Numbered from the stretch's first letter, positions 23,566 through 47,495 are shown. The stretch is DNA of 64,000 bases from Kudoa neothunni (GCA_964304625.1 OZ199838.1:6621731-6685730); one strand, 5' to 3'. A program made the numbers and translations. Notes: a model not told the origin generated them from the sequence alone.

Positions 23566-25779
23566 TTATAGCCCCACAGCGCCTCCAAATCTTCTAAAGT
23601 CACCTACGCCAATTATATTTGTAGGTTTAGCATTCTCATCGAGTGTAAGTTTTATTCCTGAAACAGTCGAAGAAAAAATATATTTGATATTTCGGAATTT
23701 AACTCTTCTTCTATTAGCGATGGACTTACGAGCAAACCTTGGTATTATTTTAACGCGTTCCGAAAGGACACTAAAGAGAATTAGGATGCGTTTAATAATT
23801 CAAATTTACGTCTTGGTATTCGGTATAACAGAAATTCGAAAAGCTTTGATTGATCCTAATAGCGTAGCGTTTCTGTAATAATGATTGAAGAGAACTTGGG
23901 CAATGACAGCTGGAATTCTGATTCCTCCAGTGGCTGATAATATCGCTTCAATGCGTTCATGTTTTTTGTTCAAAATCAGTACTGGCGTCAAGTAGTTTAC
24001 ATGTCTAAAAATTTTGGTCCCATTTTGTGTAGTATTCTTAGAGGACGCAGAGTTGTTTATTTCAGTTTCCCAAGAAATTTGTTTACGATCGACCATAAAA
24101 CCCAAATCAGGATAACTAATCTGATAACCGAATCTAACGATGAAATAAATACAAACTTTTCTGCAATAAAAATAATATTACATGCCGGTTATAAAAGATG
24201 CCATCGATACACCATTTCCGCAGCTATCTATCACACTTACTGAGGCAGTTCCATGAAGTTCGTGGGGAATTATATCGCTTGTGTCGCCGATTGTTTTATT
24301 TTCTGTTGTTTCTGGTTGTTCCGAGGTAAACTCGGGTGGTACATAATTAGGTAGTGTTTCAGTTCCGGCATTTTTGTTTTTGGCGTATTTGTAAAAGTTT
24401 TTACTTTTCTTGATCTATTGTTTAGCTTATTGCACTTTAATTAATGTATATTACTGCATTATGTGCCTTTGAAATTTCTTTTGGAAATCGATAAGCTTTC
24501 TCCACCGAATCATACACACGAACAAAATACATTGGTTTTGGTCTCGCACTCGGCTTAAAAATAGCTGGTGTTTGCTGTTGATAATCTAGTTGGTAAATTT
24601 AAACTGGACTATTCGGATAGAAGAACTTGTTACTTTTTAAATTATTAATAATTGATATAAGGATTGGGCCTCCACTTCTATTGGAAGATGTTACCATATT
24701 TGTTTGGTTATCCAGGGTCTGTATGATTGGGTTGATATTGCTGGTTTTATACTCGGAAAAATCGTTCAAAGAGCTAAAAATTGATTTTTTCTTAAGGAAA
24801 TCTATCATTTTTTTGGCTATATCTCCAGTGTAAATTGTTTTATGGTCCAACGACAAGAGGTGCAATGTTTTCGCTAAAGGCTCATTCGCAATCCGGCTGC
24901 CTACGGGTTTCAGAACATCTTTTTCGAATAGCATTTCCCTACAATTTTTAAATATTAATCACATTACAATAAACTACCTTAAGAATGGATCTTTTTTCAA
25001 TTTCCTAGCATACGATTTAGCCATATAATAAAACGACGGTTTTATTTGCCAACCTTTAAGAGCAATCACAATCGGAAGATCGAAAAGTGATTTCCATTCA
25101 AGATTTCCTCCTGCCTTCCACAAATCATGTAATCCCATTATCATTCCTGGTATTCCAAATGTGCCTTTTTTTATTCGATTGAACAAAAATTAAACATTCT
25201 ACAATTATCTACCTTTCTTTTTTGACTTTGCTTCCTCCAAATTCAAACCTGACGGCTTAATTTGGCGAAAGTCTATTATCTTCAGTTTTCCGTTCATTAA
25301 ACTTAAAGATATACCGCCACCAGCCAATCCTTAAAATATATTGAGTTATAGCGGTAAAATAAATATAATCAAGATACCTGTGGATGAAAATTCAATTACT
25401 GTCAAACAAAGTGATGCAGCAATTGCAGAGTCAATCGCATTACCACCATTAGCAAGATAGAATTCTCCCACTCTAGAACATCTCACGTCATCCGATGAAA
25501 CCATAGCCTTCTTGGATTCGTTAAACATTTTGTAGTTTCTTTTTGAGAAATCAGTGAAATAAGTTAGATTGAACTTTTCGCTGGCCAAAAGTTTTTTCAC
25601 CCTTTCTTCGACATCTTCAACCGATGAATCAGGCTTAGGGGTTACATCCGCACATTCCTTTCTCCTCAGAAAGGTTATTACAACAACTATACCTATCTTT
25701 AACATCAAAAAATGACTATTTAGATATTAAAAAAATATACTATTTTATACAAAGAATCTTTGTTTGTTGATAGCCACAT
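23566..25779 (-). CDS. GGT-family Ntn-hydrolase, array copy 1 (divergent substrate pocket)
   Basis: MWLSTNKDSLYKI|IGIVVVITFL...; VSSDDVRCSRVG...GGNAIDSAIAASLCL...STGLAGGG; GIPGMIMGL; small subunit HG-TASVSVIDSCGNGVS...SATGGIRIP...GDFRRFGGAVGL*. Start codon inferred by analogy with the other copies. Confidence 0.88.
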
Positions 25780-26386
25780 TCTAACTGAGTTAGGTTGTAA
25801 TAGCCTGGCTAATTTTTTCAGTAAATGGTCGCTTCGAACTTACATTCCCCATGATAAATACTGATAATAGAAGCCAGTCGATGATTCCATAGAAGAATAG
25901 TTTTATGGGGTTTCAATTCCCTTGTCTTTTTAATATCAATGTGCGATTGATAGTAGATGAAAAATGAACCTCGTTACTATCCATATCTTAATAAATTGCA
26001 CTTGGTGATAAATATCACATTTTTTTATTAATTCTAATTCATGTTCTAAAAATAAGTGACACAAATATCAAATATGGTAGACTTTTATTTATGCAAGCAT
26101 ATTTCGGATAATTTTTCTTAAATAATAAATGCATTATATACTATAATATATTTCGACGATAAAATAGATATTATAGACAATTGAATTTTGTAAAAAATTA
26201 GAACTGAGTAATAATGTTTTAAATTAATAATTAAGATAACTCTGGTTTATATAAATTAAAAGCACATTCTAAACTATGTAAATAAGCCTAATTCCATCTT
26301 TCATTATGATACAAACTTATTTACAATAAATATTAAAGTCAAGAAATTTTCATCAACCTCGCTTGCTGTGATCTTATAATATAGAT

Positions 26387-27005
26387 CAGCGGTTCTCAAA
26401 ATGGGTTCCACGGAACCTTTGGGTCCATGAAAAAAGCGTAGAGTTCCACAGAGCTACAATAAAAAAAAAATTTAATCATTATATAAGAAATCGGTACAGA
26501 TCATACAACGTCAGTAAATTTTCATTGATAGCTAGAGTTGACGTCACTGGTGATAGCTGGTTTTTGTCGGTTAGCCAAGCACCAACGCACCTCCGGGAAG
26601 ATTGAGCTGCTTTGCTGTTAACAGAAGTATTTCTTCTATTCAACAAATTATTTTTATTATGTTTAAAGCCCTACAATAGACCGGAGCTAAAAAAGCATAA
26701 AATTAGCAATATCATCTAAAGAAGGCACATGAACAGGTGAACTTTCAAACGAACGAGCTGCAAGCATTAGTTAAAAACACTGAATATGTTCCAATATGCT
26801 GAATGTTTTAAATTATTTTTTTTATTATAATATGTTTTTACCACTCCAATTTCGATAAGTGTATAAATAAAATATTTTTTTATCATGAGTATTATCCCAT
26901 TAAGGTTTGTTGAATTAACCTTAACGGGTTATTTAAAATAAGGGATCCATAATATTTCAAATAATGTAAAAGGGTTCCATTTCATATAAAGTTTGAGAAC
27001 CATTG
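26387..27005. mobile_element. hAT (Buster/Charlie-type) MITE
   Basis: TIRs CAGCGGTTCTCAAA / TTTGAGAACCATTG; degenerate 8-bp TSD atatagat / aagtagat with central TA; subterminal GGTTCCA-like motifs. Confidence 0.8.
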
Positions 27006-27343
27006 AAGTAGATTAATGTATATTATAAGAGATTGGGTTCCATTCTAAGAGAAAATGCCTTTTTTTGCAACAAAATACAATCGAAATTGAATAAAATCTT
27101 ATTAATTTTTAACGGTTTACAGAGCTTAAAAAGTTTATTATCAAAAATAAGAGTTGATTAGATTTTGCAAGTGAACAATATAAATTCCTAGTATTTGGCT
27201 TATAGGAAAATGACATATAGCAATTAAATAAAAATAAATTCTATCAGAATTATCTATAGGTTATAAAATTTTTGTAGTTAGACTGGAAAGTGAGTAACTT
27301 TAATGAAGAAATTGATTTGGATAATATTGTTCAATGAGTAATA

Positions 27344-29542
27344 TCAAATCCCAGCAACACCGCCATTTTTCCTGAAATCTGCTGCTCCGAAGATTGTCTC
27401 TGTATTTTTATTTTCCTTGTATGTAACGCTAATGCCAGAAACTGTGCTAGAGTAATCTTGTCTTATATTTCCAATAACAAGAATGTCCTTTTCCTTCAGA
27501 ATTTTTCTGACTTCCAGTGGTATTTGACGTACTTCTTCCGAAAATACTCTAAAGTAAGGTTGAAAGATACCCCAACAATTGTACGTACGCATTGGGTTTG
27601 TAAGGATGGAAAAGACGATAAAGTTCGATTGAGGATTCCAACGAAATGTTTCTGTGGTAATGGTTTACTAATACTTGTGCAACCGCCGATGGTGACTTTC
27701 TTCCTCCTGTTCCCGAAAACACGCCTTGGATTTTATTGATTCTTTTATCGACAACAAATGTTGGGGCCACATAATTTATGTGTCTAGTGGCCATATAGTC
27801 ATCGGTCTTATTGTAGAGAGGTTCTCCCGTATATTTATCGTAGTAAGGCCATGTAAACACTTTGCTGTTGGCCACAATACCTAATGTAGGAAAGGTGTAT
27901 TTGGCACCGAATCTATAACCATTGAAATTAAACTCAACCACTATGTTACTATGTAGAAAACAACTACAAATTGCTAATTGATGACTCAATTGAAACGGCA
28001 TTTCCACATTTATCGATCACGCTCAAAGATACAGTTCCGTGAATACCATCTGAAGTCATGTCATACATTGAATCTGTGTCTGAATTTTGTGTTGGCACCT
28101 GCACCTTCTTCTCAGAATACTTGGTTTGGTATAATGTGTAGGCACGTCGTATCATAGGCATCTACAAAATTCCGCGTATAAATAGTTACATTTCTGTATG
28201 AACCTCACCATATTTATGTTTGGTATGATACTTATATCACGGTAAGCGTGCTTTATTATTTCGACTAGGTTTTTGTAATAATCATCGCTGACACTCGAAT
28301 CTTCATGAAATACTTCACTGCTTACATTTCTATACTCTACATGTTTATTGTATCATCATAAAAACAGTTTTACTATAAATTTACCTCCCATTGCATTCAT
28401 TATATAGGAAAGGAAAGGCCCCCCAGTTCTTCGGGAAGGGGTTACCATATATAAGCTTTGATTAAGTTTTACAAACAATAAATCAAGACTTTGTGTCCTG
28501 TATCGTGAAAAATCAATCGTAGAGTTGATTATTGACATGTTGTTTAATTGACTGACCATAATTTTGTTAATAGTTCCGTTGTAAAAGTCTTGGGGGTTAT
28601 TGGAAAGCATAAACAAAGTTCTCGCCAATGGTACATTGCGAATATACTCACCAACTTTTTTAATTTCACCGTCGTCGAATAACATATTTCTAAGTGAGCA
28701 TCGATTAATTCTAAAGATTCTCAGTAAAATTTACCCCAGAAAGGGATCTCTCATCAAGCTGTTCTTATGATTCTTAACAGTTTCATAAAAACTAGGTTTT
28801 ATTTGCCATCCCTTATAAGCAATCATGATGGGAATATCGAAAAGCGTTTTCCAATCCATTTTTCCACCTTGTTTCCACAAGTCATACAATCCTTGCACCA
28901 TACCAGGTATTCCAAAAACTCTACCATCTATTTTTTAATATCAATTGTGAAAAAGTATATTGGTCAACAACCTTTATTTATTGTGTATGTTCCATTACAA
29001 ATATGACAATGTGATGATGCCTCGCGAAAATCAAGTGCCATTATTTTTCGTTTAATATAACTCAAAGAAACTCCACCACCAGCCAATCCTAAGTAAATCA
29101 AAGCTACCAATGATAGCAATTACATGAACTTACCTGTTGATTGAAATTCTATTACCGAGAGACAAAGAGTTGCAGCAATCGCAGCGTCGATAGCGTTACA
29201 GTGATTTTTAAGGTAGTACGCCCCCACTCTAGAACATCTTAAATCGTCAGAGGAGACCATTGCAATTCCTGAACTGTTCAATAATATGTAGGTTTCATTA
29301 TCGAGATCCGTGAAATGTGACAAATTATATTTCCCGGTCTCCAATAGACCAGATACATGACCTGAAACCCTTTCATTCAAGTCGGACAAGTTTGTACTGG
29401 TATCTGCACAATCGCGTATTCCAAAATTAACTGAGATGACTAAGACTACAACCTTTATAATGATAAAGAATTAATTTTGTTGATCAATGTAATTCTTTAC
29501 CATATGGAATACATATTTTTTTAATTTTAATGGTTCCAACAT
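27344..29542 (-). CDS. GGT-family Ntn-hydrolase, array copy 2 (divergent substrate pocket)
   Basis: MLEPLKLKKYVFHM|VVVLVISVNFG...; VSSDDLRCSRVG...NAIDAAIAATLCL; DFREA; HG-TVSLSVIDKCGNAVS; SGTGGRKSP; AADFRKNGGVAGI*. Confidence 0.9.
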
Positions 29543-30337
29543 TATTTATATTACGGCCTCAAGATTTTGAATATATCATTCACTTTATTCTATTGTAAAC
29601 TGGGTCTATAGTACCCAACTTAAGCTACTAACCAATTCCAATAATAGAAGCTAGTGGGCGAAATCATAAAAGAGTTTTCTAAATGGATTAAATTCCCATG
29701 ACCATCTTTTCCATATTCATATCTTAGTTTATTGAAATTTAATGTCGGGAGAATTGGCTCAATAGTGATGCTAATCTTGAGTTCATTTTGTAGAAATGGT
29801 AACAATTTTTATGAAGTATCTGATACCAAATATTTTATTGCAATCAATGTAGAAGATAATTAAACATTTTAATATATCTTATTTATTTTCAACCCAATGT
29901 AAATTTTCCAACTGTGTCAAGAATTAGGAATATATTGCATTGAAAAACCTTCTCAAACCATTCAAAAATATATTACCCATCAAATTATTTATTTCAGAAA
30001 AATTTATCCCGTGCAGAAGCAGGATCACTCATTGACCTCAGAAAAAATCAGCGTTAATAAACTTTCACTGCACTTAAATTTCGATCATTTGACTTATAAC
30101 ATTGTGCTACGCCGATAAAAACCAAAATCAAACTGAATTTTTATTTCGTGCATTACAAAAAACGACATTCTTTGTCAGTCATACCATTTAGTACACAAGA
30201 GAAAATGAGTAAGCTTAAATTAACCAAACTCGAACCATGCTAATGATTTTATAGACATGATTCCTTTTCCAAATCAGAATCTTAAAAAAAACATAGCTAA
30301 GCATTATAAATGCCATCAGTAACGAATCACACACTAA

Positions 30338-31567
30338 CCCTCGAAGAACCGTACTCAAAAAACTTAAGCCCAACGGGTGTCGGTCAGCGACCCCAATGGT
30401 TTTCTACTATAATGATTGAGTATGATTCTAACTTTTGGTATATAGATTAATTGATCGTTTGGCCATTGAAATATATGCTTAAAATATCAATGCGACGAAA
30501 GAATTTGTTTAAAATATCGTAACCATGTCGGGAGACATTACCAATTAAACTTATCCAAACAAAACTTAGAATGGTGGATGTAATAGATATAACTATTTTG
30601 GGTTCGTTTTTAACTGAACGTAACAAAATAGAAACTTTTGCGCCACTTTAATATCAATATTAGGTCGCCCGGCCACGACGCTAACAGGAGGTAACTCCGG
30701 TAAAGTTCGGTAATCCAATATTGAATTACACTAAGATATGTTTACAGCACATATTGAGAAATAAATAATAATGTTGGGCCTAAATAAGTAAGGATGAATT
30801 TATTTGAATTATGAGTGAAAATATTTTTAATCAGAATATAAATTTGATTCAAAGCTTATTTCTTTCAGCTTGGTTTTAATCGTTTCAATAGTTATAAGGA
30901 AATGGCCCAGATTAATCTCACTAAAAATTAAACCAATAAAACGATTAACATAAATGTTTACTTGTTAGTCTTATGGAATAGGAAATCGTTGAAATTTGGC
31001 GATATCATGACACAGAAATAATGTGACTAAGTTCTAATCTATTAATTATTAGACTATTAATTTTTAGTAAAATATGGCCACCTTGTAATTTACCACAATT
31101 TAAATTTAATTCATGGAAAAAAATATTTTAAAAGCACGTCAGGCAACCTGTTCAGTTTTCGACGCGTAATAACTTGGACGACAACAATAGTGGGATTAAT
31201 CTCTTTTAATTCCATTCCATCTTCGGAATCTTATAACAGATAGCAAGATTAGTTACAAATTACAATATTCTTCCGTTTGGTCGCGACAACATATATTGGA
31301 ATGATCATTTTTCTTATCATATAAATCAAATACATTTGATGCAACCGTATAAAATACTTTTAAATAACATTATCAGTTCTACGTAAACTTAAGCAAAATT
31401 TTTGAACTGTAGAATACTATGATTCATCTCAAATTTTGTATTTCCAAGCAATACACGGCAATCTAAGATTATATGAATCCAAAAATTAAAATGAAAAGTT
31501 TAAGCAGGTAAAAACAAACATTTACCGAAATTGGGGTCACAAATGACCCCAGTTGGTCCCAAGAGGG
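30338..31567 (-). mobile_element. Decayed, internally deleted piggyBac element
   Basis: Ends (c)taa-CCCTCGAAGAACC and GGTCCCAAGAGGG-ttaa; subterminal GGGGTCA-caaa-TGACCCC palindrome; minus-strand remnant TRRKLNRLPDVL resembles the piggyBac 'RRTRRWP' motif. Confidence 0.6.
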
Positions 31568-32178
31568 TTAATGGATATTGTTTTATCACATAACTATAAA
31601 ATTTAATATCGACAATTTAAATAAAACAATCATAATTTTATATACATGAGGATTTAATGTCTCGTAAAGGATGCGCAAACGCTTGATTATTGTATCGAGA
31701 AATTAATGATTTTTATTGTGCTTAGAAATTTCAGAATTTGATCTCTACGTACCCGCCTTTTTTATGCGCATTGTCTACACGAATTCAACTGCTGGCGAGG
31801 AGAAATACTTTCCCGCAAATACAATATACAATACACAAAGAATTATACAATAACTTTACTGCTGTATAAGCTGAATAAACTATATTGTAATTTTACGATT
31901 ATTCTAAACCAATTAATATTTGAATGTTAGATTCGAAGTATTGTTATTAATCTTAATTATATTAACCCTTAGATGTTAATGTGGCTTTGCAACCGAATTA
32001 CCATTTAATTTAATAATAAGTTTACTATCGACCCATTTTAATTGCAAAAAACCATATGAAATTCAACAGATAAATTCTGTTATAATTGGCCAAATAAGGT
32101 GAAATTCATAATGAAATATCACGACCAAATAATTTTGGAAGAAAATGTTCGATTGTTATGAGTGAAACTTGGTAGAAG

Positions 32179-34365
32179 TTACACTCCTTTTAGACCGGAA
32201 TTTCTTCGGTGGTCACCCGAACCGAAAAGTGATTCTGGGAATCCATTCTCATCTCTTGTTACACGGATTCCTAAAACGGAGCTGTCATGACCCATAGCAA
32301 CCTTCATGAGTGTTGTGTTTCTATTTGAAGTTATGATGTTAACTATATTCTCAGGAATAGGTGTCTCATTATCTTCAGAAAGACTAAAATGAATCAGAAT
32401 ATAAATAATGTTCAAAATATTTACATGTTTTTTATATAATGTTTGCCAATTCTAAAGTCTGTTATTGCCTGACCAAGAGGGATATGTCTCCAATAGTGAC
32501 TCAACATAACTTGGGAAAGTCCACTCGGAATTCGTCTTGCACCGGTTGCTGAGAATATTCCATTCACTAGTTTGTCGGTTTTGTCAATAACTATAACAGG
32601 AGCGTGATATGTCTTCATGAAACCCTCTCTAGGTGGAATTGGTTTTAAGTCTTCACCGATTTTAAGAATTGTAAAAGTATTGGCGATTATTCCCAATGGG
32701 GGATAGCTAAAGTCACCGCCAAATCTAGAATAATTAGAGTTGAATGTATATTAACAGTTAATTTTAGATAGTATATTTACAGGGTATTTATAGCAGTTTG
32801 CATTGCTATTGCATTGCCACATTTATCAATAACATTTATGGTAACCGAACCTGGAATATCATCCTCTTCATCACCGATTCCATTTGACAGCGAAAAAACT
32901 CTGCTTACTAATTTTCTTGCTGCAAGCACACCTAATTTTTCGTTATTGTAAGCATTTTCTATTACTTTTAGCTATAAATAATTTTATTTTTACTCTCATT
33001 ATGACGAATTATACTGTATCTTTAAATGCCAAATTCTCTCTATTGAAGTGTGAGTTTCTTATGCTATCATAGAGGGCCAAATAGTAAACGTCATCTACAG
33101 CACCGTTCGAATGTATAACTTGGGGGTTACGGTCAATGTATCCTATTAACCAAGATTTTGAAAAATAATCAGTTCATAATTTACATCATTATGATTTATA
33201 CCTTTCATGGAGTTCAAAATATAAGCCAGAAGTGCTCCACCAGTTCTTTTATTTGTTGTAACCATTTCCAGATTATCCTTCAAATCGAACTTCAATGGTT
33301 CAATGTATTTAGTAGCATATGCGCCCATCTCACTGACAAGAGCTGCATGGTTTTCGGGACTGATTTGTTGCATCATAGTTGAGGGAATGGCTCCTTCATA
33401 CATGCTTCTGTAATTCAACGATAGCAAGTGAAGTGTTCCTGCCAATGGTTTGTTGACAATAACATCTCCAATCGATTTTACTGAATCTCCGTTGAACAAC
33501 ATCGATCTACATTAGTCGAAACGTTAGGTTCAATTTATCAAACTGAGAAAAATCACTTAAGGAATGGATCTTTTTTAAGAAGATGTTTCTTTGCTACCAA
33601 CATACGTCTCAAACTAGGTTTGATGTCCCATCCGTTGTATGCAATTAGGATTGGAATATCGAAAAGAGATTTCCAATCAATTTTTCCTCCTTGTTTCCAC
33701 AAGTTGTGCATTCCCAAAATCATTCCAGGTATTTTAAGGACTTCTCCAGCTTTGTGAAAATTCAAATATATACGTAAATACACATATAATAATTGACTCA
33801 CTTCCATTTACAGCAATGTTATCGTTTGAGATCAGGGTTTTTGATATAGTTCCGCCGAAATCCAATAAATGGAACTGTCCATTCAAATAACTTAAGGATT
33901 GTCCACCTCCAGACAATCCTAGAGAAGATAAAGATACGAGATTATTTGATAAAAGAACCTGTTGATGCTAAGCTGACAACGGTAAGACAAAGAGATGTAG
34001 CCACTGCAGCATCCATTGCGTTTCCGCCGTGTTCAAGGTAAAAAGCTCCTGCTCTAGAACATCTTACGTCGTCGGAGACAACCATTCCATTTTTTGTTGT
34101 GTTATCCCATTTGTTACCAGGACCATGTTCAAAGGTGGTAAAATATGTTAGGTTGTATTTTTCAGAATTCAAGAGATCATTCACGCGAAGCGAAACTTCT
34201 TCCTCCAATGCAGCGAAATCTATTGGTTCAACCTGCACGGAGAAATCAAAATAATTGATAGCCAATAACAAAACAACCTAAAATTTATATATACAAGTTC
34301 GGTCTTAAGGATAAAATCGATGATACCAGCATAAAAGCTGTTCCTCTTCTTTGTATTGCAGACAT
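32179..34365 (-). CDS. GGT-family Ntn-hydrolase, array copy 3 (Ser at the nucleophile position)
   Basis: MSAIQRRGTAFML|VVLLLAINYF...; GMVVSDDVRCSRAG...GGNAMDAAVATSLCL; PG-SVTINVIDKCGNAIA; SATGARRIP; GSGDHRRNSGLKGV*. Confidence 0.88.
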
Positions 34366-35309
34366 TGTTTTCAATTTTACAAATTCTGTCAACTTAAGTA
34401 TTTTTTCTTCTTTTATATACAATTTTTACTATAGATACATATTGGGTTAATTATCAGATTATTATCTAAATTATATTTCAAATCTTATATAGGGAAATAT
34501 TTTAACGGATTTAATTCCCCTATGTCTTGGTTAATTCTGTCAAAGTCGTTATTACATCGTCAAATTATCGAGGGAATATGTACAATGGTCTTTGCTTGAT
34601 ATACAGTGTTGAAAGTTACTAAGTTTTATGGTAGATAAATTAATTGTTTTTAATCATTTATTAATTAAATCACAATTTATGCATATTTTTCAAAGTACAT
34701 TCATTGCTATTAGTAATTATTTTTCTTTTATATTAGATTCAATTTTTTGTAAATTAATTAGAAATACTATTAAAACTTGTCCAATATTTTCTTAACCAAT
34801 AGATTTAATTTTGCAAATGGGCTGACTGGTTTATTTCCACAGGGGAGTTAATTTAAATCGACCAACCGACAATAATCATATATAGGAATTGAAGGTTCTT
34901 CAAAATTTTACGTTGATTATTAATCAAAAGATCATAAATATTATTTAATCCAATCCCCCGTGATGATTTATAATGTTTTATATATTAAATTAATTTAGAA
35001 GAACATAGAAATATAAGTATAAAGCCTTGATAGCATCATTATTTTCTCTTAATGAATCAACAAATAAGGCAAATTCGTAGTAGAATCTAAACGATCCATT
35101 CAGTTTTAGACAGTCTAGCCTCTAATAGAAGAACTTTTTATAAAATATGGCTATAATTTGAAACGTTTTTGAGTATATACAGCGGATGACGGGTCGAATT
35201 CAGCATCACTTGAGGTGACTTATCATGATATCGTGGTTAAAACAACGCTAATATAGTTTAACTACATAAAATCAAAACAATTATAGTGAATTATTAAACT
35301 TTTCTTTTT

Positions 35310-36430
35310 AGTTTTCATTTGCCACAATATGAATCGGCACAAATTTACTACTCGTGGGCATATGAAGAGACCAGGCAGTTTCATTAGATAAAGGACAAAG
35401 TAGACACAATCTAATATTAAAAAAGAATATCGAATGAGAAGACAGCAAAAACAAGAGGTTCAAATATTCTAACTTAAAATAAACCTCATTAAAGAGGATT
35501 TAAAGTAATAAAGTCCATTAAAAAGATCATAATGCAGAAGACTGCAAAAATTCTCGAAGCATTAAAAATGGGTCACTTGGATTCGTAAGGTCAACAAGTA
35601 AACAACTGGATTGAGGTTATGATAACGCTAAATGCGGGAATCTCATCAGATAATATAACCGAAATAGCGAATACTTTGATTTTTAAAGATTCTACTATAC
35701 CCAAAAAATGATCATCTGGTTAACTTAGAGGATTTGAAAGTCATTTTAAAATAAAAACCTCAATTTCGAGCAGAAGAAATAGCGTGGACATTAATATAAC
35801 ATAAGGTTGGAAACTTCCTCTTAAAAATATGAGTCTTGGGAGCATGATAATATATTTGGCCTTGATGAAAGCTAATTATTTTATCAAAAAAGACGTATTA
35901 TTTTCTTAGATAACTTATTTTAATTCAGTTAATAGTAAATAATAATTTGTTATTGTTAGAAGAAAATATCAAAAAAAAGAGTCACCATAGTTATTACATG
36001 TTAAATGAATGATTAAAAAGTAACAGCCTTAATAATCTGACATGCTAAAACGATATAAAGGAATATAAAACTTATTAAGATCCTAATCCATAAATATGGA
36101 TAATTTTACAATTATTTACCTATTACCTATTTAGTTGGAATAAAAATCATATACATTTAAATAGAAAAGTAATTTTATGTTGATAAGTGTCTGACAGATC
36201 TCAACCTGACATTTTCTACTACTTTATTATTTTTCTCCTCGTAAACTCCACCAGTGTGCTATAACCCCAGGATCAAAGTATCATTGACAGTTTCAAGGGT
36301 TGCTGCTGAAATTACCCTATTAATTATATGATGAAACAAACAGAACCCAATTTTAAAATGTAGGAAGAAATATCAATAAAAGTTACGTCTTCCATGTGGA
36401 GAAGAAGACGATTTCATACGCCGAGAACCA
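35310..36430 (+). pseudogene. Possible highly decayed non-LTR retroelement (R2/NeSL-like) remnant
   Basis: FICHNMNRHKFTTRGHMKR near 35315 resembles a degenerate C2H2 finger; PG and SSMWRR fragments at 36260-36410 resemble the start of an RT domain. Many stops; weak. Confidence 0.22.
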
Positions 36431-37550
36431 AAAAGTGTGAATAAATATTACTCCCGTTTCTATTTCTATAATAAAATACGACAAAAAAATGAAAATTTCA
36501 ATGTAAATAACATTACAACCGGGAAAGTATTAATTTATCTGAGTAATTCGAACGTATTTTTCTACAAAAAAATTCTCAAATGTTATCCATGATATTTACG
36601 GTCGTTGACCTAGAAACGGTGAGTTATGATTAAATCAGAGCTACCCCAACAAAATTATTGATCTTTCCAAACAAAAATGTAACAAATAAGTCTGACAAAG
36701 AACTTTAGTAATATTTTATTGTATTTAGGTATGCAAATTGTAGCTATTACCATTTAAAAATGTTTATTGTTTGGTAACCCTCATCAGTTGATCGTCATCC
36801 CGTCTAAATGAGTTGTTTCTACGAATCAAAAATCAAGGATCGACAAGATTAATCACACTTAATCTATACATTATTATTAATTTATTTTTATTAAATATAT
36901 TTTTAAATGAAAATGAACTCATAGTGATGGAAGAGACCGGCTCAATTGTAAAAACCTGCATTAATATTAAAGTGTTATTCTCATACGCTTGGGCGGCTTG
37001 ATGGCACCTCTGAACCAATTCCCATTTTAGTACCCACAACGCATCACCTACTGTAATTTGAAAAATATTGCTAAATGAAGTCTTATCTGAAAGATTTTTT
37101 CGGAATTTTTTCCTCTCCTTAGACGAATTGAAATAATATTTAAATATTAAATACAAAATGTCAATCTTCACAAATAAATTAGTGATATCTTGTTAATATC
37201 AATTAAGTATTAATTTAAAATCCATAATTACACAATTTAAACAATAAATAGCAATCCTTTTTATGATAAAAAAATTAAAATTGGTGCCTTGAGTATGATT
37301 TTACTAGTAGCAATTATAATAATAAGTTTTTGCTTATTAAATGTAACAGCTCTTAATGGAATCCTTAAATTTCGTTTATAATAATATGAATCATTATTGA
37401 AATTCCTATTCATAAAAGAAAGAGACTAATTCATTATATTCACTATACTACTGATAAGTATCAATTTTTCTAATATGTGAATAAGTTCATTTGGCGTTTA
37501 ATTAATGTTAAATTTGAGACAGTTTGCAAAACAGAGTTATAGCTTGGATG

Positions 37551-39764
37551 TTAATATCCTGATGTTCCTCCATTCCTTCTATAATCTCCCATGGCGAAAA
37601 TTGAATCTGGATTTCCTCTTTCATTCCTTGTTATAGAAACTGCTGAAACGGATGACAAATAAGGAACTCGTATATATTTATAAGGAATGTCTTTCCTCAA
37701 AAGTATGTATTCATAGACATATTTATGGATTTGCATCACACCCTCTGAATATAGTCTAAATCAAATTATAAATGAGTTTATTTACGGATTGCTTTACCCG
37801 GGATACAGGTAGTGATTAAACATTCTAAAAACTGTTAAGGCTGAACCAAGGTTCATATGTCTGTAGTAATGATTGATCATAACTTGTGCAACGGCGGGTG
37901 CAATTTTGTGTCCGCCAGTTCCTGAAAACATTCCATAAATGTTGTTATCGGTTTTATCGATGACTATAACTGGTGAATCATATGTTTGTTGGATTTTAAT
38001 GGTGGGTTCAATGATGCTTGAATTTTCATCCATTTGTACATTTGTGTAAGTGTTGCCTATAATTCCAAGGGATGGAAATGCATATCCTCCGCCAAAGCTA
38101 AAATTTCCAACTCAAAACATCATCGACTGGTAACTTTAAATATTTATTTTATTACAGTTGATCGATTTCTGTTACCATAGATATTCCATTCCCACAATCA
38201 TCAAGAACATTTAATGAAACTGTTCCATGGAATTCGTCTTTAAAAGCCTCATCATTTTCAACGGGTGGAGGAGATTTATAATTTCTTGCCAACTTGGATT
38301 TCTTTGTAACATTGTTTGTTTGATTAGTATATTGATAATATGCATTTTTTATTATTTCTATCTAAATTTTTAAAAATTAAGATGGGGCTTGCAATGTGTA
38401 TATCATGCAAAGAGATGGTACTCGTTCATCCGTCATAAAGTTGGGTGAGTTTTTTTCAGCATCTGTTATTATGTTAAAAAGAGTCATATAATAAGTAGCC
38501 TTCATATGGTAACCATGTTGAAATAGTTCAGGATTGGCTTGAGCATAGCCTAATTTTGAATCATCATTTAGTGAATTTTAATTGTTTTATTCATTTTTAA
38601 TTTGAATACATTTGCAAAGTTTGACATACCTTTTACCGCGTTAATTATATATGCCACTAATGGACCACCAGTATTTTTAGACGTTGTTACCATGTACTTG
38701 CTGCCTTCCAGCTGAAGGTTTAATAGATCCAGTTTCTTCGTAGTGTAATTTCCAATTTCAGCAATAATTTTTTCAGGCTCAGAAATGTTTATATGCTTCA
38801 TCATAATCGACGGAATACTTCCAAAGTACATGCTGCTGTAATTTTTAGAAATCAAATGAAGTGTTCTTGCCAACGGTTTGTTGATGATATGCTCACGATT
38901 TGTTTTCACCGTAGTGTCATTAAATAATATAGACCTAAATAATTTTAAAATTAAATCAAGAAAAATCTTCACAAGTCACTTGAGGAAGGGATCATGTATC
39001 AGCCTTTTTCTTTTTAACCAAAGCATACGGTACAAACTAGGTTTTATCTCCCATCCCTTCAGGGCAATCATGATTGGAATGTCAAACAATGTTTGCCATT
39101 CGATTTTGCCTCCTAGTTTCCATAATTCATATAATCCCTTTACGAATCCAGGGATTTTAAATGCCCTCACAACTTTATTGTAATATCAAACAAAATATCA
39201 TCATATCTGAAAATAACCTCCACTTGGAAAATTAACACTAGTGAAGAAGGTTTCGCTAGTCTTTGCCCGGAAATCTAGGGCGCGAAATTTACCGTTAACA
39301 TACATCAACGCTAGTCCACCCCCAGACAATCCTAAGAATCATCAAAACGCGGCATTTACTAATTTGGAACCTGTTGATGCCAATTCTATGACGGAATGAC
39401 AAAGTGAGGCAGCAACTGCACCATCATAAACATTTCCGCCTCTTTGAAGATAATAAGCACCAACCCTGGAACAGCGCGTATCATCTGAAACAATCACTCC
39501 ATTCTTTAATGTTCTGTCAAATAATGTGCGGTTTACGTATTCAAAATTAGTAAAATAAGACAAATTATAGTTTCCAGTGTTTATGAGATCGTTCACTCGC
39601 TTTGCAACTTCTTCGTCCAATAACGTGAAATCTGGGTCTTCTGTAACTGTAATTACTTTATGAAAAAATTGAAGAATTTCAAGGACGATAATCTTAAAGG
39701 AGTCAAATTAAAAACCAACTAAAACATAGCTTACTACACCAAGTTTAATCCTGAAATGTGACAT
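37551..39764 (-). CDS. GGT-family Ntn-hydrolase, array copy 4 (divergent substrate pocket)
   Basis: MSHFRIKLGV|IIVLEILQFF...; VIVSDDTRCSRVG...GGNVYDGAVAASLC; KIPGFVKGL; HG-TVSLNVLDDCGNGIS; SGTGGHKIA; MGDYRRNGGTSGY*. Confidence 0.9.
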
Positions 39765-41189
39765 CTTAAATACTTAACTAATAATAATTATTAAAAACAA
39801 AGTTTTCAAATTTTTAAAAAGTTAGTGAATAATTTACAATTCACGTCAATCTACTTTGGAGAATCTATAATAGACGCCGTAAGGTTAGTCCATAAAAAAT
39901 TCAATGAAAGCATTTCAATTCCCATTTCTACAAAAAAGTATATTCATCCTTAATACTATTTCTCAATTGTCTCGAGAATTGCGGCAAACTATCCTGATAA
40001 ATTTTTTGTTTTGTTACTTAAATTATCTATATTTTTATTATTGTTCCTTAATTTTTTTATAAGCTTTAAAATTTATATCATTTTATATTATCAAAATCCA
40101 TTTTTAAAATTTCAAATTGACCCTTTGATATACAAATTTTCTGAGTATGTTAAATATGTTAATTCTTAAGTTCTGATCTCAAATAACTGATCTTATTACA
40201 TCATCAAACTAATTTGAATAAATGTTGAAACTAAAAGTTGATTTAATCGATAAAAAGAAAATGGATTTGCTGCGCTGAAGAATTATTTCTAACAAATATT
40301 GGAAGATAAACTAGAATCTATTTACATTTTTGGTGTTTATATATAATTAATAATTAAAAGTATTTTTAACAATGTATCTATTCAAAGATTTTATTCAACC
40401 AAATACGACAGATAATGTTTATATGTTTAATATGATTTAATTTATTTAAGATAATAAAAGGAGCATATATAGTGTATTTTGAGAAGGAATATAAAGAAAT
40501 ATTTTATTTTACCAAACATTACCACAGATAAACATAAATTTAATTAATAAAATCAGCATATTTTCCAACTTTATTTCAACTAAGTATTCAATAAATGAGT
40601 TACAATCATTATTTATTTTTAAGTTTACCAATAAATCTTGACTTCATTTATAAAGAATTTTGTTTTGTATTCTACGAAGTTTTCCTAACCGCAAAAAATT
40701 CTTAAGTATATTATTAAATATAACATGGTTCCTGTTGGGTAAAAATCCATTTTTATATTTCCCATTTTATCAATTTTTTTCGATTACAACCATTATACAC
40801 CTTGTACAATGGACGACGTGTGGTTCTTGGTGACGTATAGTTTTTAACTTTTATAACTTGTTGAAAATAACCATTTATAGAATAAATTAGTCTGTAAAAT
40901 TTAGCTGAAAGTGTATACATTCGACATTGTTTATTGCACACTTTTTAAGGGATTCGAAAAAGTATTTAAACACATGTATGCATGCTCAAATGCGTAAAAA
41001 ATCAAATATTTGGATACGTAATATTATTAATTATTATGTTTATTTTATTTTCCTGTAGTGAAATTTTAGTTCATATATTTTAGAATATGGTAAAAACTAC
41101 TTCACTCATTTTTCAACAAATATAAAACAAATAGTTTCTAGGCTATATTTAAGCTGAAAAAATTCTTCAACATGCTTACCGCTCTAAGA

Positions 41190-41836
41190 CAGTGTCTTTC
41201 AACCTTTTTGGAATTGTAGAACCCCCAAGAGATTAAAATTTTTTCGCGGATCCCCACATAAAATTAAACCCAGATGAAGAAAATACAAGTTTTTAAATTT
41301 TCAATTGCGCTCACCAAAAAAATAACAGAAATATGTTCAAAGTTTATTTTGTATTAAAAAAATAGACTAATGTGATATTTGTGACTGGTGATTTCGTATT
41401 ATAACTACAATATTTGGATATTGTTCATAAGTGAAAGCAAGCATGGATCATTCACTTTCTGTTGTTTCAATTGCGACAGAACAACACGATCCCTGGTATC
41501 GCAAAATGTTTGCTGTGTCAGAAAATTTTTAAGGTAAAAAGATGAAACGATGGCAAAATTTGATGAAATTCGGGCTCTTGCATTCAAAAACGAACTCAAA
41601 TCCTTGAAGCATCGCTACCATCATTCAGTGGGGTTTTTACAAATTAAGTTTTTAAATCTTTATTACTAAAATTATTCTAAATTTAGAGACTTGTTATGAG
41701 AATAATAATTAATTAAAATAGACGAATTTGTTCATATTCGACATCGCCAAACGTATCGGCAACATTTATTTAAATTTAGATGCCTATAACAAATTTTCAT
41801 GTGTTCCTGTCGCGGAACCCGGGTTAAAAACCACTG
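41190..41836. mobile_element. hAT (Buster/Charlie-type) MITE
   Basis: TIRs CAGTGTCTTTCAACC / GGTTAAAAACCACTG; perfect 8-bp TSD CTCTAAGA at 41182-41189 and 41837-41844. Confidence 0.88.
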
Positions 41837-43121
41837 CTCTAAGAACTAATTTTCCATGCTACTTATGTAGTTTATTTCGCGAATATAATGTTAAACTGAT
41901 AAAGTCATTCTAGTTTTGGATATTTGATCCCATTATACGATATTTTTTAGGCAGAGGCTATATCTAAGGCAACGAAGTTCTCAAAACCCATAACAAGCAT
42001 GATTATGCAATTTTATTTTTCAATTACCTTTAACCGATCTAGTTTTTTAATAATTTTTAACAATTTCGTAAAGTTAAGATTTTGGTGAGGATATTGATCC
42101 CATATAATCAAAAATAATATTTTCGTAGACTATAAAACTATTTTGTTGTATTTTAAGTATTTAATCGTCGTAGCCGGGAATAAGAAAACAAACATTACTA
42201 TCAATATTAATTTTAACCACGTATGTAATATTGCACTACTCTGGTTTCTGAGATTGAAAATATATGAGATTGGAACTCAATTCAACCCCTTCGAACTTAA
42301 AATCACATAAGTGATTGAGAGCTAGATATTTAGGGACGATTGGTGTTACAAAGATAAAAATAACATTTAACCATATATAAATATTCAAAATTATCCTTTA
42401 GGTTTTTTTTGTTTTATGATAAACCTTGTCGAATTAAATGCTTTCAGGACTTATTAATTCAAAGTTATTAGAAAGTAAGTTTGGAAAAATAATAAATAAT
42501 TAATAAATCTTTCTTTATTATTAAAAAAACGAATAAATTATAAAAGTGTTATATTTTAATGGGAGACACGTATTCATTGATGTTACCGTGGGTTGTCACC
42601 CCTTGTAATACGTTAAGTAACTGAATGCTTTTGAAAACTTGATTTGCTTTCAGTATTATTTAGACAACTCGTAGAAAGTCATCTGTTGTCAATAATATGT
42701 AAAAAAAGTTTAAAAAAATAAAAACTCGTTTATATTCTTTTGTTTATATATTAACAGAAAATATGTGAATATTTAGATTAATGAAACCGATTAAAGTTAA
42801 AAAAATAGTAAACAATTAAAAATGCATCAACGCAACGAGAAAAAGGAGAATTTTTAGTTTTTAACCTATTATTTAAACATATTTTTGCTTAAGATTTATT
42901 AATTTAAAAAGAAACTAACACTTGGAAAATTCCGTCACCTGCTATTAGGTAAAGCTGGGATTTCGCGCTTGTTGATAATAATTGCACAATATCATGAGGA
43001 GTTCGAATTCTATGGGAAATGTAATTTCATCAGTTAACGATAACTTTACTACACCTTCACACTTAAAATAATTTCATCAAATATCACTCTCCATAAAACA
43101 AAAACACGCTTATTAATTATA

Positions 43122-45041
43122 CAGTAGGTAGCCGATTTTCGGTAACTTGGACTTTCTTCCATTAGAATATTGTTTTAAAATTTTAAACCATATATTTGAT
43201 TTTATTTTTAGGTTTTAATAGTAATTTAAAAAAATTTTAAAAATTGAACATCTAAAAGTGGGGGTTTTTACATTATTAGCGCTTAACTGATTTTCCGTAA
43301 CTTTTCAGTCCTAGGCGGATTTAGCGGTATGCCTTTTTTTACATTTATAATGTCTGAAAAAGTTAAAAATAATAAAATAATAAAACTAAAATATAATTTT
43401 ATTGATTTTTTTAAAAGTATACTAAACAGGAGTGCAAAAATACTACTTTTAGTAAATTTAAGCCCCTTGCTATTTCTACTCTAGACATTATCCTGATTAG
43501 GAAGAAGGATATAGTTTTATCTTATAAAATGGCTTAGCTTCTTCAGAGAGAAAAAATTTTAAACAATGTTTAAATAACGACCTCGATACTTTAGTATATG
43601 ACTGGGTGAGTTATTTGAGATAAAAAAATTGAACTATCTGCTCATAATATCACATGAAAGAAACCAATTGACAAAAGAATTGAACCTAAGCGTAGTAATG
43701 ATCCATGATTGATTTCATTGTTTTAAATCACGATTTAATTTAAAAATATCACTGCTCATGGTTATGCTGCTTATGCCGATTAAAGTTTTGTAGAAAATTG
43801 GTTATCTTATTTTAATGACTAAGTCAAAGGTAACAACGATGGCTGTATCTATAACCATGATGAAACTGCATTATTTTAGTAGAAACAAAGAGGTCCATTA
43901 TTTTTAATGCTATTTTTGTCGAGAGAAAAAAATCTAAAAAATAGTTACTGTTTTGCGGCGTGCATCTACGCCTGGAGGTTGCATTGAATCTCTTGTGGTT
44001 GGAAATCACAAAAACTCTGTTGTTTCAAAAATGCTAAATAAAACATTCCTAGTAGAATACAAATCACACAGGAAAGAATGGATGACTAGGGAAACATTTA
44101 ACAAATATCTCTCTAATTTTGACAATGCATTCAAAACGAAGTACAAGTGAGTTTACTACTTCTTAATAATGCCGTTTGCCACGCCGAAATTCATTTGTCA
44201 AATATCTCTTTTATATTCCTTACAACAAAGTCAACTAATGTTTTGCAACTATTAGACCATTGAATCATCTTCACATTCAAACCAAATTACAAAAACGGTT
44301 TAGTAGAAAGCCATATTGCTGCAGTTAGCAGTGATATAATATACATCCTCCCAAGGTATGCTTCAAACATTGTTCCTAATTATAAATAATGGGACGATGT
44401 TTCAAAGGATATTGTATTTAACTGACTCAAAAAATATGAGTTTCCCCCAGCCGATAAATACGATCGTCCAGTAAATATTAATTTAAGCAGTGAAGAATTC
44501 TGTTGTCTCGGCCCCCTCATTCATTGAGTCTCCCGCTGTATCCTGTTTCGCACTCATCCTGGTTAGCGCCCTAGAAACACTTTTGCAAGACACGACACAA
44601 AACGATTAATATCGAGCATAAGTCAAATATAAAAGAATATATATATCCAACAAATTCTTAGCTGGAAATTCTGAGATTATTCAAGAGTAAGTCATTATGC
44701 CTACATCAAAATACTTTGACGAGCTTGCTCTTTTAATTGTTAAATCTGCGGATTCTGAAACTGAAGATTTAGGATCGGAAGAATTTATATCAGAAAAAGA
44801 CATATTTAAATTTTTAAACAAGCAGAATAAGTATACGACAGAGAGGAATTGATTATCTAGGCGAAACAATGAGTTGAGATGATAAAATTACGACATACGT
44901 CTTTAAAAATATAAATAAAAACAACATTAAATAACATATTATTTCAATGAAAATAGATGAATGTATAAATGAAATTAATTTCTTTAAAATAGGTATATTT
45001 TTTGCGTGCGCAGAAAGTTACTGAATATACGTCGCTGACTG
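43122..45041 (+). mobile_element. Decayed Tigger/pogo (CENP-B/TIGD-like) DNA transposon
   Basis: TA-flanked 27-bp imperfect TIRs (CAGTAGGTAGCCGATTTTCGGTAACTT / AAGTTACTGAATATACGTCGCTGACTG); broken DDE_1 transposase IYNHDETALF...EYKSHRKEWMTRETF...LLLNNAVCH...LQLLDH. Confidence 0.82.
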
Positions 45042-45257
45042 TATAACTACAATTTTATTATTTATATCCACTTTTAAAATAATCTCCAAATAATATATAT
45101 TTTGCTTAGAGTTAAAAAGCAAAAATTTAACGCAGCAGATAAATACACTTGCTCATCGGTACCCTTAGAAATATATATTCGCTAAAAAATTCTAAAATGT
45201 ACAAATGAACTAAAATCCATATTTTTCGAGATAAGTTCGGATGCTCATGTATTACAA

Positions 45258-47495
45258 TTACAAACCGACTGCTCCTCCATCTTTTCTAAAATCTGCTGCC
45301 CCAAACACACTAATCGAATTCGAACGCCTATCTCGTAATACACTGATTCCGGTAACAGCGCTTGAATGTGCTTCTTTTAATCCCTTCATTTTAAAATGAT
45401 TTCTTTTTAAATACCTTTTGATACGAGCTGGGATTGGTTTTACTCGTTCATAATGAACACTAAATAGCTTAATCAATCTGATTAGAATATCTAATGGATA
45501 CAGGTTGGGCATGTAAGGATGAAAGACACGAAAGTGAGAAATTGAGGTAGGAAGGGAGATTTTTTTGATATAGTGGTTGATAATCACTTGCGCTAACGAT
45601 GATGGAATTTTCTTGCCGCCTGTTCCAGAAAACAATCCAACCAAGCGTTTGGATTTTTTCTCTACGATAATTGTGGGGGCCATTGCAGATAATGGCCGAC
45701 TATGATAAAATGGGCTATTTTTCTTAACTTTGGGTTTAGGGCTTTTCTTTGTGTATCTGTTGTAATCTGCCAAATTATTGTTGGCTATGATGCCCGTCCC
45801 AGAAAATGAGAATTTAGCTCCAAACCTATAAATGGGTTGGCATACATACCAAATTAATTGATAAAGATTTCATTAAAACATAATATACTGATGGTTGATT
45901 GTGGAAGTAATAGATATTCCATTTCCGTATTTATCGATGACATTCAATGATGAAGTACCTTCATTACCCAAAGTTTGATAAAATTTTAATGGTGGAAATT
46001 CTATATATTAGGTATGATGAGATACGTATTTCATCATTATTATATTACTTCTACGTAAGAATGATTTTGTTGTCATTATTTTATACATTAGCTATATATA
46101 TATAACTTTAAAAAAATACTACGGCTACACAAACCCCCGAAGGTGGAAGTATCTCGGAAACATCTCGAACTGAACTCTTTATCACATTGAGAAGTTTTTT
46201 ATAATAAATATATTCGGTTTCGTCAGATTGATATGACCTCGGCTCCCTGTTAAGGAATCCTAAACAGCGGAATAAAAATTTTCTCTTTTAAAGGCCTCAC
46301 CTAACATAGATTGAATAATGTAAACAAGAGATGGTCCGCCAGTTCGTTCAGAAGTTGTTATCAAATATTTTGATTCATCAAGGTGAAGTACGAGATATTT
46401 AAGGGGTATCACTCGGTAACGCTCAAAATCTCTTAATCTATGAGGCGCTCTCTTTCGCCTCAATATTTTCATCATTGCTCTAGCCAGGATACCTTGATTC
46501 ATGGCTTTGTAGTTTTTGGATAAAATATAAAGTGATTTTGCCAGCTGAGGATTACGAATTCTTGATCCCACTCTTTTAAGCCGTTTATTTTTGAAAAACA
46601 TACGCCTAATTTCAATTATATTTATGGCGATATAAAAATAAAAACCCTACCTCAATAAGGGATCACGATAGATTTCCCTACGATGAAGTTTGGCGTCTAT
46701 ATAACAATGACGCTTGATTTGCCAGCCTTTATAAGCGATAATAATGGGTAGTTCAAAAAGGGATGACCATTTTGTTTTCCGCCCATTTTCCACAATTTAT
46801 ACATTCCATAAGGGATACCCGGTATTCCAAATGAGTAAGGCCCTAAAAGAAAACCAATAAATAATTTATTTTAGAAATTATTTATATAAATATATATATA
46901 TTGAACCTGATTTCTTTGGTTGAAGGTTGCGAGTAATCATTTTTAATGGGGCGGTCTCTCGAAAATTAAGCGCTCTCAATTTCCCATTTAAAAACACTTA
47001 ACGAAAACCCTCCTCCAGCCAGTCCTATAAAATAATACTCTATTCGATGTTTTAAGTCATCATAACAATCATCTTAAACCTGTGGATTGTAATTCAATAA
47101 CTGAGAGACAAAGCTGAGTAGCTATTGCAGCATCAACGGCGTTTCCTCCATTTTCAAGTTGATAAACCCCCACTCTCGAACATCTTACGTCGTCAGACAC
47201 GACCATACCTTCCTGCGATGTGTCGGTTTAAAACACTTGCCATGTTTGAAGGTAGTTCAGTGAAGAATTGCAAGTCATAATTTCTATTTCGCAATAGATT
47301 GTCGACGTACTTTCTAATAGATCTAATTGAATATCTGTCATCTCCGGATATTCTTTTTTTACAATTACTGCACTGCATGCAAACAATAAAAATCATAAAA
47401 AACTATCAGAATTTTATCAAGCCAACACAAAAATTTATTACTATGTTGATATCGAGATTAGGAAAATAATATCTACACATGTTTGTGAAGTGCAT
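45258..47495 (-). CDS. GGT: Gamma-glutamyltranspeptidase, array copy 5 (canonical motifs; two apparent 1-nt frameshifts)
   Basis: NFRETAP; EG-TSSLNVIDKYGNGISITSTIN; GIIANNNLADY; RPLSAMAPTI; SGTGGKKI; AADFRKDGGAVGL*. Alignment to the other copies needs removal of 1 nt at 47225-47226 and addition of 1 nt at about 46770-46778. Confidence 0.88.

Follow-up and report, generated by a model that had tools for sequence, protein, structure and literature searches.

Canonical gamma-glutamyl transpeptidases (GGTs; PF01019, MEROPS T03), known from human (GGT1), E. coli and H. pylori, share a whole-length domain, the position of the Gly-Thr nucleophile, the oxyanion loop, cysteines of the C50-C74 type, a C-terminal DxRKxG motif and N-terminal secretory targeting (predicted in our case) with a group of genes that we describe here from the myxozoan Kudoa neothunni. 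Four of these genes are copies 1-4 of a tandem array of five in a stretch of 64,000 nucleotides (GCA_964304625.1 OZ199838.1:6621731-6685730; the window), and two, d1 and d2, lie elsewhere in the genome. The six genes, referred to as derived, differ from canonical GGTs in that they lack Asp423 (human GGT1 numbering throughout), carry (N/T/S)(Y/F) at positions 451-452, have lost Thr399 in five of six cases and add an N-terminal segment of about 45 amino acids with KYNLSYFT as well as an invariant Cys in a DxCGN motif. Copy 5, in contrast, has a canonical pocket.

The nearest full-length relatives, 'gamma-glutamyltranspeptidase 2' of Thelohanellus kitauei (KII61910) and a protein of Henneguya salminicola (KAF0989620), both likewise myxozoan, have a signal-like N-terminus and several large-subunit motifs in common with copy 5, but a canonical pocket (NNQMSDF, PLSSMCP, GSGG), and no derived-pocket relatives were found in these two species. 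CapD of Bacillus anthracis is a GGT-family poly-gamma-glutamate transpeptidase. It likewise acts on a gamma-glutamyl substrate other than glutathione, but is bacterial. From the same phylum as Kudoa, NSP7 has been described as a nematocyst-specific GGT that is single-copy in all studied cnidarians including Kudoa iwatai (Shpirer et al. 2018, PMC6134521), and it is part of the capsule proteome of Ceratonova shasta (PMC5566210). NSP7 differs from the derived family in its single copy and, in the rows compared from the published alignment, in its canonical pocket and in an insert that precedes the C-terminal DFRKGG motif; on these features its counterpart in the present genome looks to be another locus, GGT-A. 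Most alike in kind is the divergent venom gamma-GT of the parasitoid wasp Aphidius ervi (PMC4035087), a secreted paralog of a parasite with a mutated active site that exists alongside canonical copies, although it is a single insect gene of independent origin for which no conservation across species was shown.

We found no literature that describes an expansion of GGTs in Kudoa or any other myxozoan, or GGTs with a derived pocket there. What is new here is probably a lineage-specific and presumably secreted GGT-derived family with a rebuilt pocket, accompanied by a dead copy of the ancestral type. On balance we favour the reading that copies 1-4 are members of a six-protein family restricted to this lineage, whose secreted, GGT-derived products of about 600 amino acids serve a purpose unrelated to glutathione.

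A GGT-derived family with an altered substrate pocket

The window is AT-rich eukaryotic DNA with about 31% G+C and very short introns, and is part of a 40.3-Mb genome in four contigs. Genes were identified by Pfam scans of open frames combined with a six-frame search of the genome, and alignment of the loci was restricted to open frames. Five PF01019 genes follow one another head to tail from 23.5 to 47.4 kb, all of them on the minus strand, the matches on the exons of all five exceeding the 27-bit cut-off and jointly spanning profile positions 4-512. No GGT relic beyond copies 1-5 was detected within the window, and at least five GGT loci (GGT-A, GGT-B, GGT-C, d1 and d2) are present elsewhere in the genome.

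Splice junctions were chosen as frame-keeping GT-AG pairs by comparison among the paralogs, which gave complete models of 598-609 amino acids lacking internal stops for copies 1-4 and d1. Each of copies 1-4 contains seven or eight introns of 39-80 nt, seven of which are common to all four with identical positions and phases (1, 1, 2, 1, 0, 2, 2), while an additional 5' intron is found in every copy except copy 1. Exon lengths are almost uniform among the copies, with 117, 193, 305, 128 and 205 nt recurring, and the junctions of d2 are those of copies 1-4 and d1. The start of copy 1, MLKIG, is also present in a contig carrying its ortholog (L019). The N-termini of copies 1-4 consist of a short basic start followed by 10-14 hydrophobic residues (copy 3: MSAIQRRGTAFMLVVLLLAINYF), from which we infer a signal peptide and secretion of the proteins. 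The putative N-terminal region of d2 shows long poly-acidic D/E runs instead of a signal-like segment (C1:1522000-1527500, about 940-1170).

To assign active-site residues copy 5 was aligned to the small subunits of solved bacterial GGTs, and the equivalences were then carried over by paralog alignments (Table 1). In copy 5 the Thr of GTSS is the N-terminal nucleophile, STIN contains the Thr of the catalytic dyad and Asn401, the Asp of NNNLADY corresponds to Asp423, PLSAM to Ser451/452, and TGG provides the oxyanion pair. When the PDB was searched with exon 6 of copy 5, chance matches to Kelch proteins ranked above the expected GGT match.

Table 1. Residues of copies 1-5 (c1-c5), d1 and d2 at active-site positions of human GGT1
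Position	c1	c2	c3	c4	d1	d2	c5
Nucleophile (381)	T	T	S	T	S	S	T
Thr399	F	S	A	E	A	G	T
Asn401	T	S	N	D	N	N	N
Asp423	S	T	L	V	V	I	D
Ser451/Ser452	NY	NY	TY	TY	TF	SY	SA
Arg107	R	R	G	R	A	R	R
Gly473/Gly474	GG	GG	GA	GG	GG	GG	GG

The anchor of the substrate's alpha-amine, Asp423 (D433 in E. coli), is missing from all six derived genes and present in copy 5, and the Ser451-Ser452 pair is changed to (N/T/S)(Y/F) in every derived gene. The dyad residue Thr399 is lost in five of six (copies 1, 3 and 4, d1 and d2); copy 2 has Ser at this position. Asn401 is lost in half of the derived genes, being retained among the intact window copies by copy 3 only, and Arg107 is lost in two (copy 3 and d1). The nucleophile is always preceded by Gly, as HGT in copies 1, 2 and 4, GT in copy 5 and Gly-Ser in copy 3, d1 and d2, and the oxyanion loop reads TGG in copies 1, 2, 4 and 5 and TGA in copy 3 and its ortholog. 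The alignment of the derived genes, all six included, has 627 columns, of which 92 are invariant and 73 conservative, and the nucleophile strand, G-[TS]-x-[ST]-[VLI]-x-V-x-D-x-C-G-N, ranks together with the oxyanion block among the best conserved stretches. The cysteines of the C50-C74 type and the C-terminal D-x-R-[RK]-x-G motif are retained. An extra Cys nine residues past the nucleophile (DxCGN) is invariant in the derived genes but absent from copy 5, its ortholog and canonical GGTs, and the N-terminal KYNLSYFT segment is likewise specific to the derived family. Judged by domain and core motifs, the derived copies are members of the GGT family (PF01019/MEROPS T03); judged by Asp423, Ser451-Ser452/Asn401 and Thr399, they lack what defines a glutathione-type GGT.

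Much of this had been proposed in an initial annotation of the window, and its description of the array agrees with our models: there are five same-strand genes of the GGT family, and their intron positions are largely common. The alignments also reproduce the motif changes that it listed for copies 1-4, namely STIN to SFIT/SSIS/TAIN/TEID, LSSM to VNYL/INYV/KTYH/QTYD and the disappearance of the D423 motif, along with the hydroxyl nucleophile after Gly and the TGG/TGA loop. Its canonical residues of copy 5 (the nucleophile, STIN, NNNLADY, PLSAM, Gly-Gly) were confirmed against solved GGT structures. For copy 3 we add a Ser nucleophile, the loss of R107 and Gly-Ala in place of Gly-Gly.

Among 1.84 billion representative proteins a profile of exon 7, which encodes the pocket, gave only 98 matches at E <= 0.001, two of which are clear family members, both exon-sized fragments; a profile of exon 1 recovered four family members, and a word-indexed search with the exon-7 alignment a single relative. 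Among contigs of other origin, L017 and L018 (metagenome ERZ28624939) carry orthologs of copy 3, L019 from the same metagenome carries an ortholog of copy 1, and L020 (SRR33849685) contains exon 1 of a copy-5-type gene. A 6.3-kb contig, L016 (Logan SRR31175926), is collinear with the window from 60.5 to 45.4 kb and bears the positional ortholog of copy 5; its protein kinase is 80-90% identical to the counterpart in the window.

A tree of 30 GGTs, NSP7 and CapD sequences not being among them, was calculated with IQ-TREE under LG+C20. All six derived genes fall into a single clade, supported at 100/99, with the topology (c2, (c1, (d2, (c4, (c3, d1))))). Copy 5 and its L016 ortholog branch just below this clade, and constraining the two together as orthologs was not rejected (approximately unbiased test, AU p = 0.13). 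All eight genes are united with support 100/100 on a long stem of 1.48, and their sister group is the pair of KII61910 and KAF0989620 (support 100/97), both with canonical pockets. Array copies are 35-48% identical in pairwise comparison, and the closest relative of copy 3 is d1, at a distance of 5 Mb, rather than one of its neighbours; the array is therefore not a recent tandem burst. On the favoured reading, a myxozoan GGT with a canonical pocket gave rise to the six-gene family within the Kudoa lineage. The founder type appears to persist as copy 5, a probable pseudogene here and intact in a relative.

We then compared window genes with their orthologs in terms of nonsynonymous (dN) and synonymous (dS) divergence. 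Copy 3 gave a dN of 0.224 and a dS of 0.964 over 512 codons (dN/dS 0.23), copy 1 a dN of 0.211 and a dS of 1.467 over 147 codons (dN/dS 0.14), and copy 5 versus its L016 ortholog a dN of 0.495 and a dS of 1.59 over 468 codons (dN/dS 0.31), all of them rough values; three syntenic neighbour genes (147-395 codons) yielded a dN of 0.12-0.31, a dS of 1.2-1.6 and a dN/dS of 0.10-0.22. The ratios of copies 1 and 3 are not near 1, the value at which the initial annotation would have given up its reading. Moreover, the ortholog of copy 3 has the derived states too: Ser as nucleophile, TAIN, Leu where Asp423 would be, Tyr452, Gly-Ala and no R107. As the orthologs give such low ratios and preserve the derived residues, copies 1 and 3 are, by these comparisons, under purifying selection and not decaying.

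Possible functions of the derived proteins

The derived proteins appear to keep the scaffold of an N-terminal nucleophile (Ntn) hydrolase, comprising the Gly-Thr/Ser site, the oxyanion loop, the cysteine pair and the C-terminal motif, and would most likely mature by self-cleavage at Gly-Thr/Ser into two chains. The residues by which a gamma-glutamyl donor is held at its free alpha-amino and alpha-carboxyl groups have been lost, suggesting that the derived proteins are not glutathione-type GGTs, and since the remodelled pocket is itself conserved between species, a function outside glutathione metabolism is likely. They may act on another amide substrate or serve as non-catalytic extracellular binding proteins. 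Given intact, conserved genes with an altered pocket, we hold it quite possible that they encode enzymes with a new substrate and almost as possible that the products are non-catalytic. What speaks for catalysis, or at least for self-cleavage, is that the hydroxyl nucleophile is invariant and the catalytic blocks are conserved. Only tentatively do we suggest that all six genes might encode active Ntn hydrolases or transpeptidases of a specificity new to T03, which would be secreted into host muscle or the forming spore and in this species would have replaced the ancestral glutathione-type enzyme of the same lineage, copy 5 being dead.

Several observations weigh against the favoured reading of the family. 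Synonymous divergence of about 1-1.5 is near saturation, making the dN/dS values rough, yet far from 1, and no full-length transcript-derived relative was present among the 1.84 billion representative proteins. By analogy, loss of Thr399 in five of six genes and Ser nucleophiles in three of six would weaken catalysis. Mutagenesis of GGTs from H. pylori (T398) and E. coli (T391S) reportedly had this effect. With the dyad Thr lost and Ser nucleophiles present, a pseudoenzyme reading is nearly as good.

According to that alternative the derived proteins would have the GGT fold without catalysis and function as secreted binding, scaffold or decoy proteins, a role also proposed for the venom gamma-GT of Aphidius ervi. 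Besides the changes at Thr399 (copies 1, 3 and 4, d1, d2) and the exchange of Thr for Ser as nucleophile (copy 3, d1, d2), it can draw on the loss of R107 in copy 3 and d1, on the Gly-Ala oxyanion pair of copy 3 and on a precedent, the abundant secreted gamma-GT with active-site mutations in Aphidius ervi venom (PMC4035087). Against this stand the Gly-preceded hydroxyl nucleophile, which is invariant in six of six genes and the ortholog, and the position of the nucleophile strand and oxyanion loop among the best conserved blocks, unexpected if the fold alone mattered. Overall we regard pseudoenzymes as possible but less likely than not. The proposal of the initial annotation that copies 1-4 are neofunctionalised for a non-glutathione substrate is consistent with intact genes, purifying selection and a conserved pocket; the link to polyglutamate or capsules that came with it finds no such backing, as set out below.

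The family is a natural experiment in which the donor pocket of a GGT was rebuilt while the self-cleaving core was kept. Myxozoan genomes are strongly reduced. In Thelohanellus the T3 (GGT) family, too, has been reported to be reduced (PMC4986447). Taken together, this suggests that a conserved expansion to six genes within the 40 Mb of a Kudoa genome answers a need particular to this lineage, possibly in dealings with the fish host. Among secreted antigens or enzymes specific to Kudoa, the genes supply definite candidates, and Kudoa species are relevant to fish quality and food safety.

Copy 5, a canonical-type gene with a disrupted frame

In the assembly the reading frame of copy 5 is interrupted at four sites (Table 2). 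At the first, in exon 1, the spacing to the MVVSDD motif fits an indel of one base when compared with the paralogs and L016; at the second, GLAGGGFSLSVF and LNGKLRALNFRETAP are read in separate frames, and at the third the same holds for LWKMGGK and KWSSLFELP. The fourth is an in-frame TAA, and the sole phase-compatible acceptor of intron 5 is located upstream of it. Two splicing solutions were considered and rejected: a GC-AG mini-intron at the frame change in exon 1, as the conserved motifs lie at the distance that an indel would give, and a 25-nt intron excising the TAA of exon 6, which would shift the frame into a stop. Exons 4, 5, 7 and 8 and every splice junction are undamaged. In the positional ortholog on L016 each exon is read in a single frame and the junctions are phase-compatible, indicating that the canonical-pocket gene is conserved in the lineage and disrupted only in this genome.

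Copies 1-4 share an upstream motif, GGGAAT[TG]NAA, located 135-150 nt before the ATG in all four, which also occurs about 150 nt before the ATG of d1 and upstream of the copy-3 ortholog on L018. The upstream region of copy 5 does not contain it. With six occurrences observed in the window and 3.2 expected, the motif is unremarkable by number; what is notable is its constant distance to the ATG. A second motif, TCTATTAT or TCTATAG, lies near it. GGGAAT[TG]NAA is possibly a common promoter element.

Four lesions as opposed to none in the four neighbours, one of them a nonsense substitution, and the missing upstream motif make it very probable that copy 5 is a real, recent pseudogene in this genome. 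The initial annotation had found no stops in the translated exons, which holds for copies 1-4 and fails for copy 5 with its three frame changes and the TAA at 46008-46010, and its view of copy 5 as a working canonical member has to be revised. Were the four lesions assembly errors, copy 5 would be functional and the array would comprise one canonical enzyme and four derived ones. All three frame changes do fall into short T or A runs, the usual place for indel errors of long reads, dN/dS versus the ortholog is still 0.31, and every catalytic motif is kept. We nevertheless consider this improbable, as copy 5 has four lesions in a coding sequence of about 1.9 kb, compared with none in about 7.2 kb of copies 1-4 within the same 24 kb, the TAA is of the substitution type and involves no indel, the motif common to the intact copies is missing, and copy 5 is the fastest-evolving gene within the syntenic block.

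Capsule-linked GGT lineages and genomic surroundings

It had also been proposed that copies 1-4 process poly-gamma-glutamate or capsule or spore-wall material in a CapD-like manner, possibly in the polar capsule. Loss of Asp423 combined with partly kept carboxylate binders (R107 in copies 1, 2 and 4 and d2; N, T or S at position 451; Asn401 in copy 3, d1 and d2) could suit internal gamma-glutamyl units, and GGT belongs to the polar capsule proteome of Ceratonova shasta and increases at sporulation in Myxobolus bejeranoi (PMC5566210, PMC10454682). However, within this genome it is GGT-A, rather than the window family, that shows the canonical pocket and the C-terminal insert of the compared NSP7 rows. 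In Nematostella, Ggt is a marker for some of the cnidocytes, and the published in-situ primers encode FLPHRKP, identifying the protein as XP_032239909 (PMC5584322); in our tree GGT-A and GGT-C cluster with it (support 99/95), apart from the window family. PGA_cap (PF09587), which stands for poly-gamma-glutamate synthesis, had no match at E <= 0.01 in the 40.3-Mb genome while control genomes were positive, a weak negative as the search was exon-wise. Exon 7 of copy 2, which encodes the pocket, matched no PDB sequence, hence no tie to CapD at the sequence level was shown.

By these comparisons the derived family is not the capsule-linked NSP7, and the polyglutamate or polar capsule link, which we consider very doubtful, was not borne out, the capsule-linked lineages being GGT-A and GGT-C. 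A cnidarian GGT need not, in other words, imply a polyglutamate or capsule function. The pocket of XP_032239909 is itself partly altered (YNDQLAD for NNEMDDF, PLSLACP for PLSSM.P), and this protein is the best full-length match to the pocket-exon profile, though it belongs to another clade.

That copies 1-4 are decaying duplicates without function is scarcely credible: strong divergence from canonical GGTs and the mere 98 matches of the pocket-exon profile could be read in this way, but frames of about 600 codons are open despite pairwise identities of 35-48%, orthologs in another species give dN/dS values of 0.14-0.23, and splice sites and phases are conserved among the four copies.

Table 2. 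Coordinates of the array, of features associated with it and of further GGT loci (window positions unless a contig is given)
Feature	Location	Strand	Description
Copy 1	23566..25705	-	Intact, 609 aa, 8 exons; Thr nucleophile (HGTAS); pocket SFIT / no D423 / NY / TGG
Copy 1 exons	25378-25705, 25213-25329, 24978-25164, 24634-24938, 24455-24585, 24182-24414, 23810-24133, 23566-23770	-	
Copy 1 upstream motif	25840..25849	-	GGGAATGTAA, 135 nt before ATG
Copy 2	27344..29542	-	Intact, 608 aa, 9 exons; Thr nucleophile; pocket SSIS / no D423 / NY / TGG
Copy 2 exons	29501-29542, 29134-29452, 28972-29088, 28735-28927, 28385-28689, 28209-28336, 27968-28161, 27589-27912, 27344-27548	-	
Copy 2 upstream motif	29688..29697	-	GGGAATTTAA, 146 nt before ATG
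Copy 3	32179..34365	-	Intact, 598 aa, 9 exons; Ser nucleophile (PGSVT), R107 lost; pocket TAIN / no D423 / TY / TGA
Copy 3 exons	34327-34365, 33959-34277, 33802-33918, 33557-33749, 33202-33506, 33015-33142, 32781-32971, 32425-32724, 32179-32383	-	
Copy 3 upstream motif	34510..34519	-	GGGAATTAAA, 145 nt before ATG
Copy 4	37551..39764	-	Intact, 599 aa, 9 exons; Thr nucleophile; pocket TEID / no D423 / TY / TGG
Copy 4 exons	39738-39764, 39371-39692, 39218-39331, 38980-39172, 38630-38934, 38422-38549, 38156-38361, 37798-38097, 37551-37755	-	
Copy 4 upstream motif	39914..39923	-	GGGAATTGAA, 150 nt before ATG
Copy 5	~45261..47396	-	Canonical pocket FRETAP, GTSS, STIN, NNNLADY, PLSAM, TGG; disrupted in assembly
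Copy 5 lesion 1	47222..47230	-	Frame change in exon 1 at about 47226/47227, context GTTTTAAACC
Copy 5 lesion 2	46986..46995	-	Frame change in T-run of exon 2, about 46990/46991
Copy 5 lesion 3	46770..46778	-	Frame change in A-run of exon 3, about 46772-46775
Copy 5 lesion 4	46008..46010	-	In-frame TAA, exon 6, 17 codons before nucleophile codon
Open frame	17572-19983	-	804 aa, directly downstream of array
Transposase remnant	51953-53016	+	PiggyBac type (DDE_Tnp_1_7)
GGT-A	C1:13.06 Mb		
GGT-B	C3:3.54 Mb		
GGT-C	C2:7.94 Mb		
d1 and d2	C1:1.515 and 1.523 Mb		Pair, same chromosome as array, 5 Mb off

Outside the array, the open frame directly downstream of it has no Pfam match, and several further long frames in the region of 8-20 kb likewise lack one. 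The transposase remnant is broken across several frames. It sits within a stretch of the window (about 49.8-54.3 kb) to which nothing corresponds in L016, the syntenic contig. The G+C content of L016 is 21%, compared with about 31% in the window, a strong compositional shift between close relatives in spite of the 80-90% identity of the kinase.

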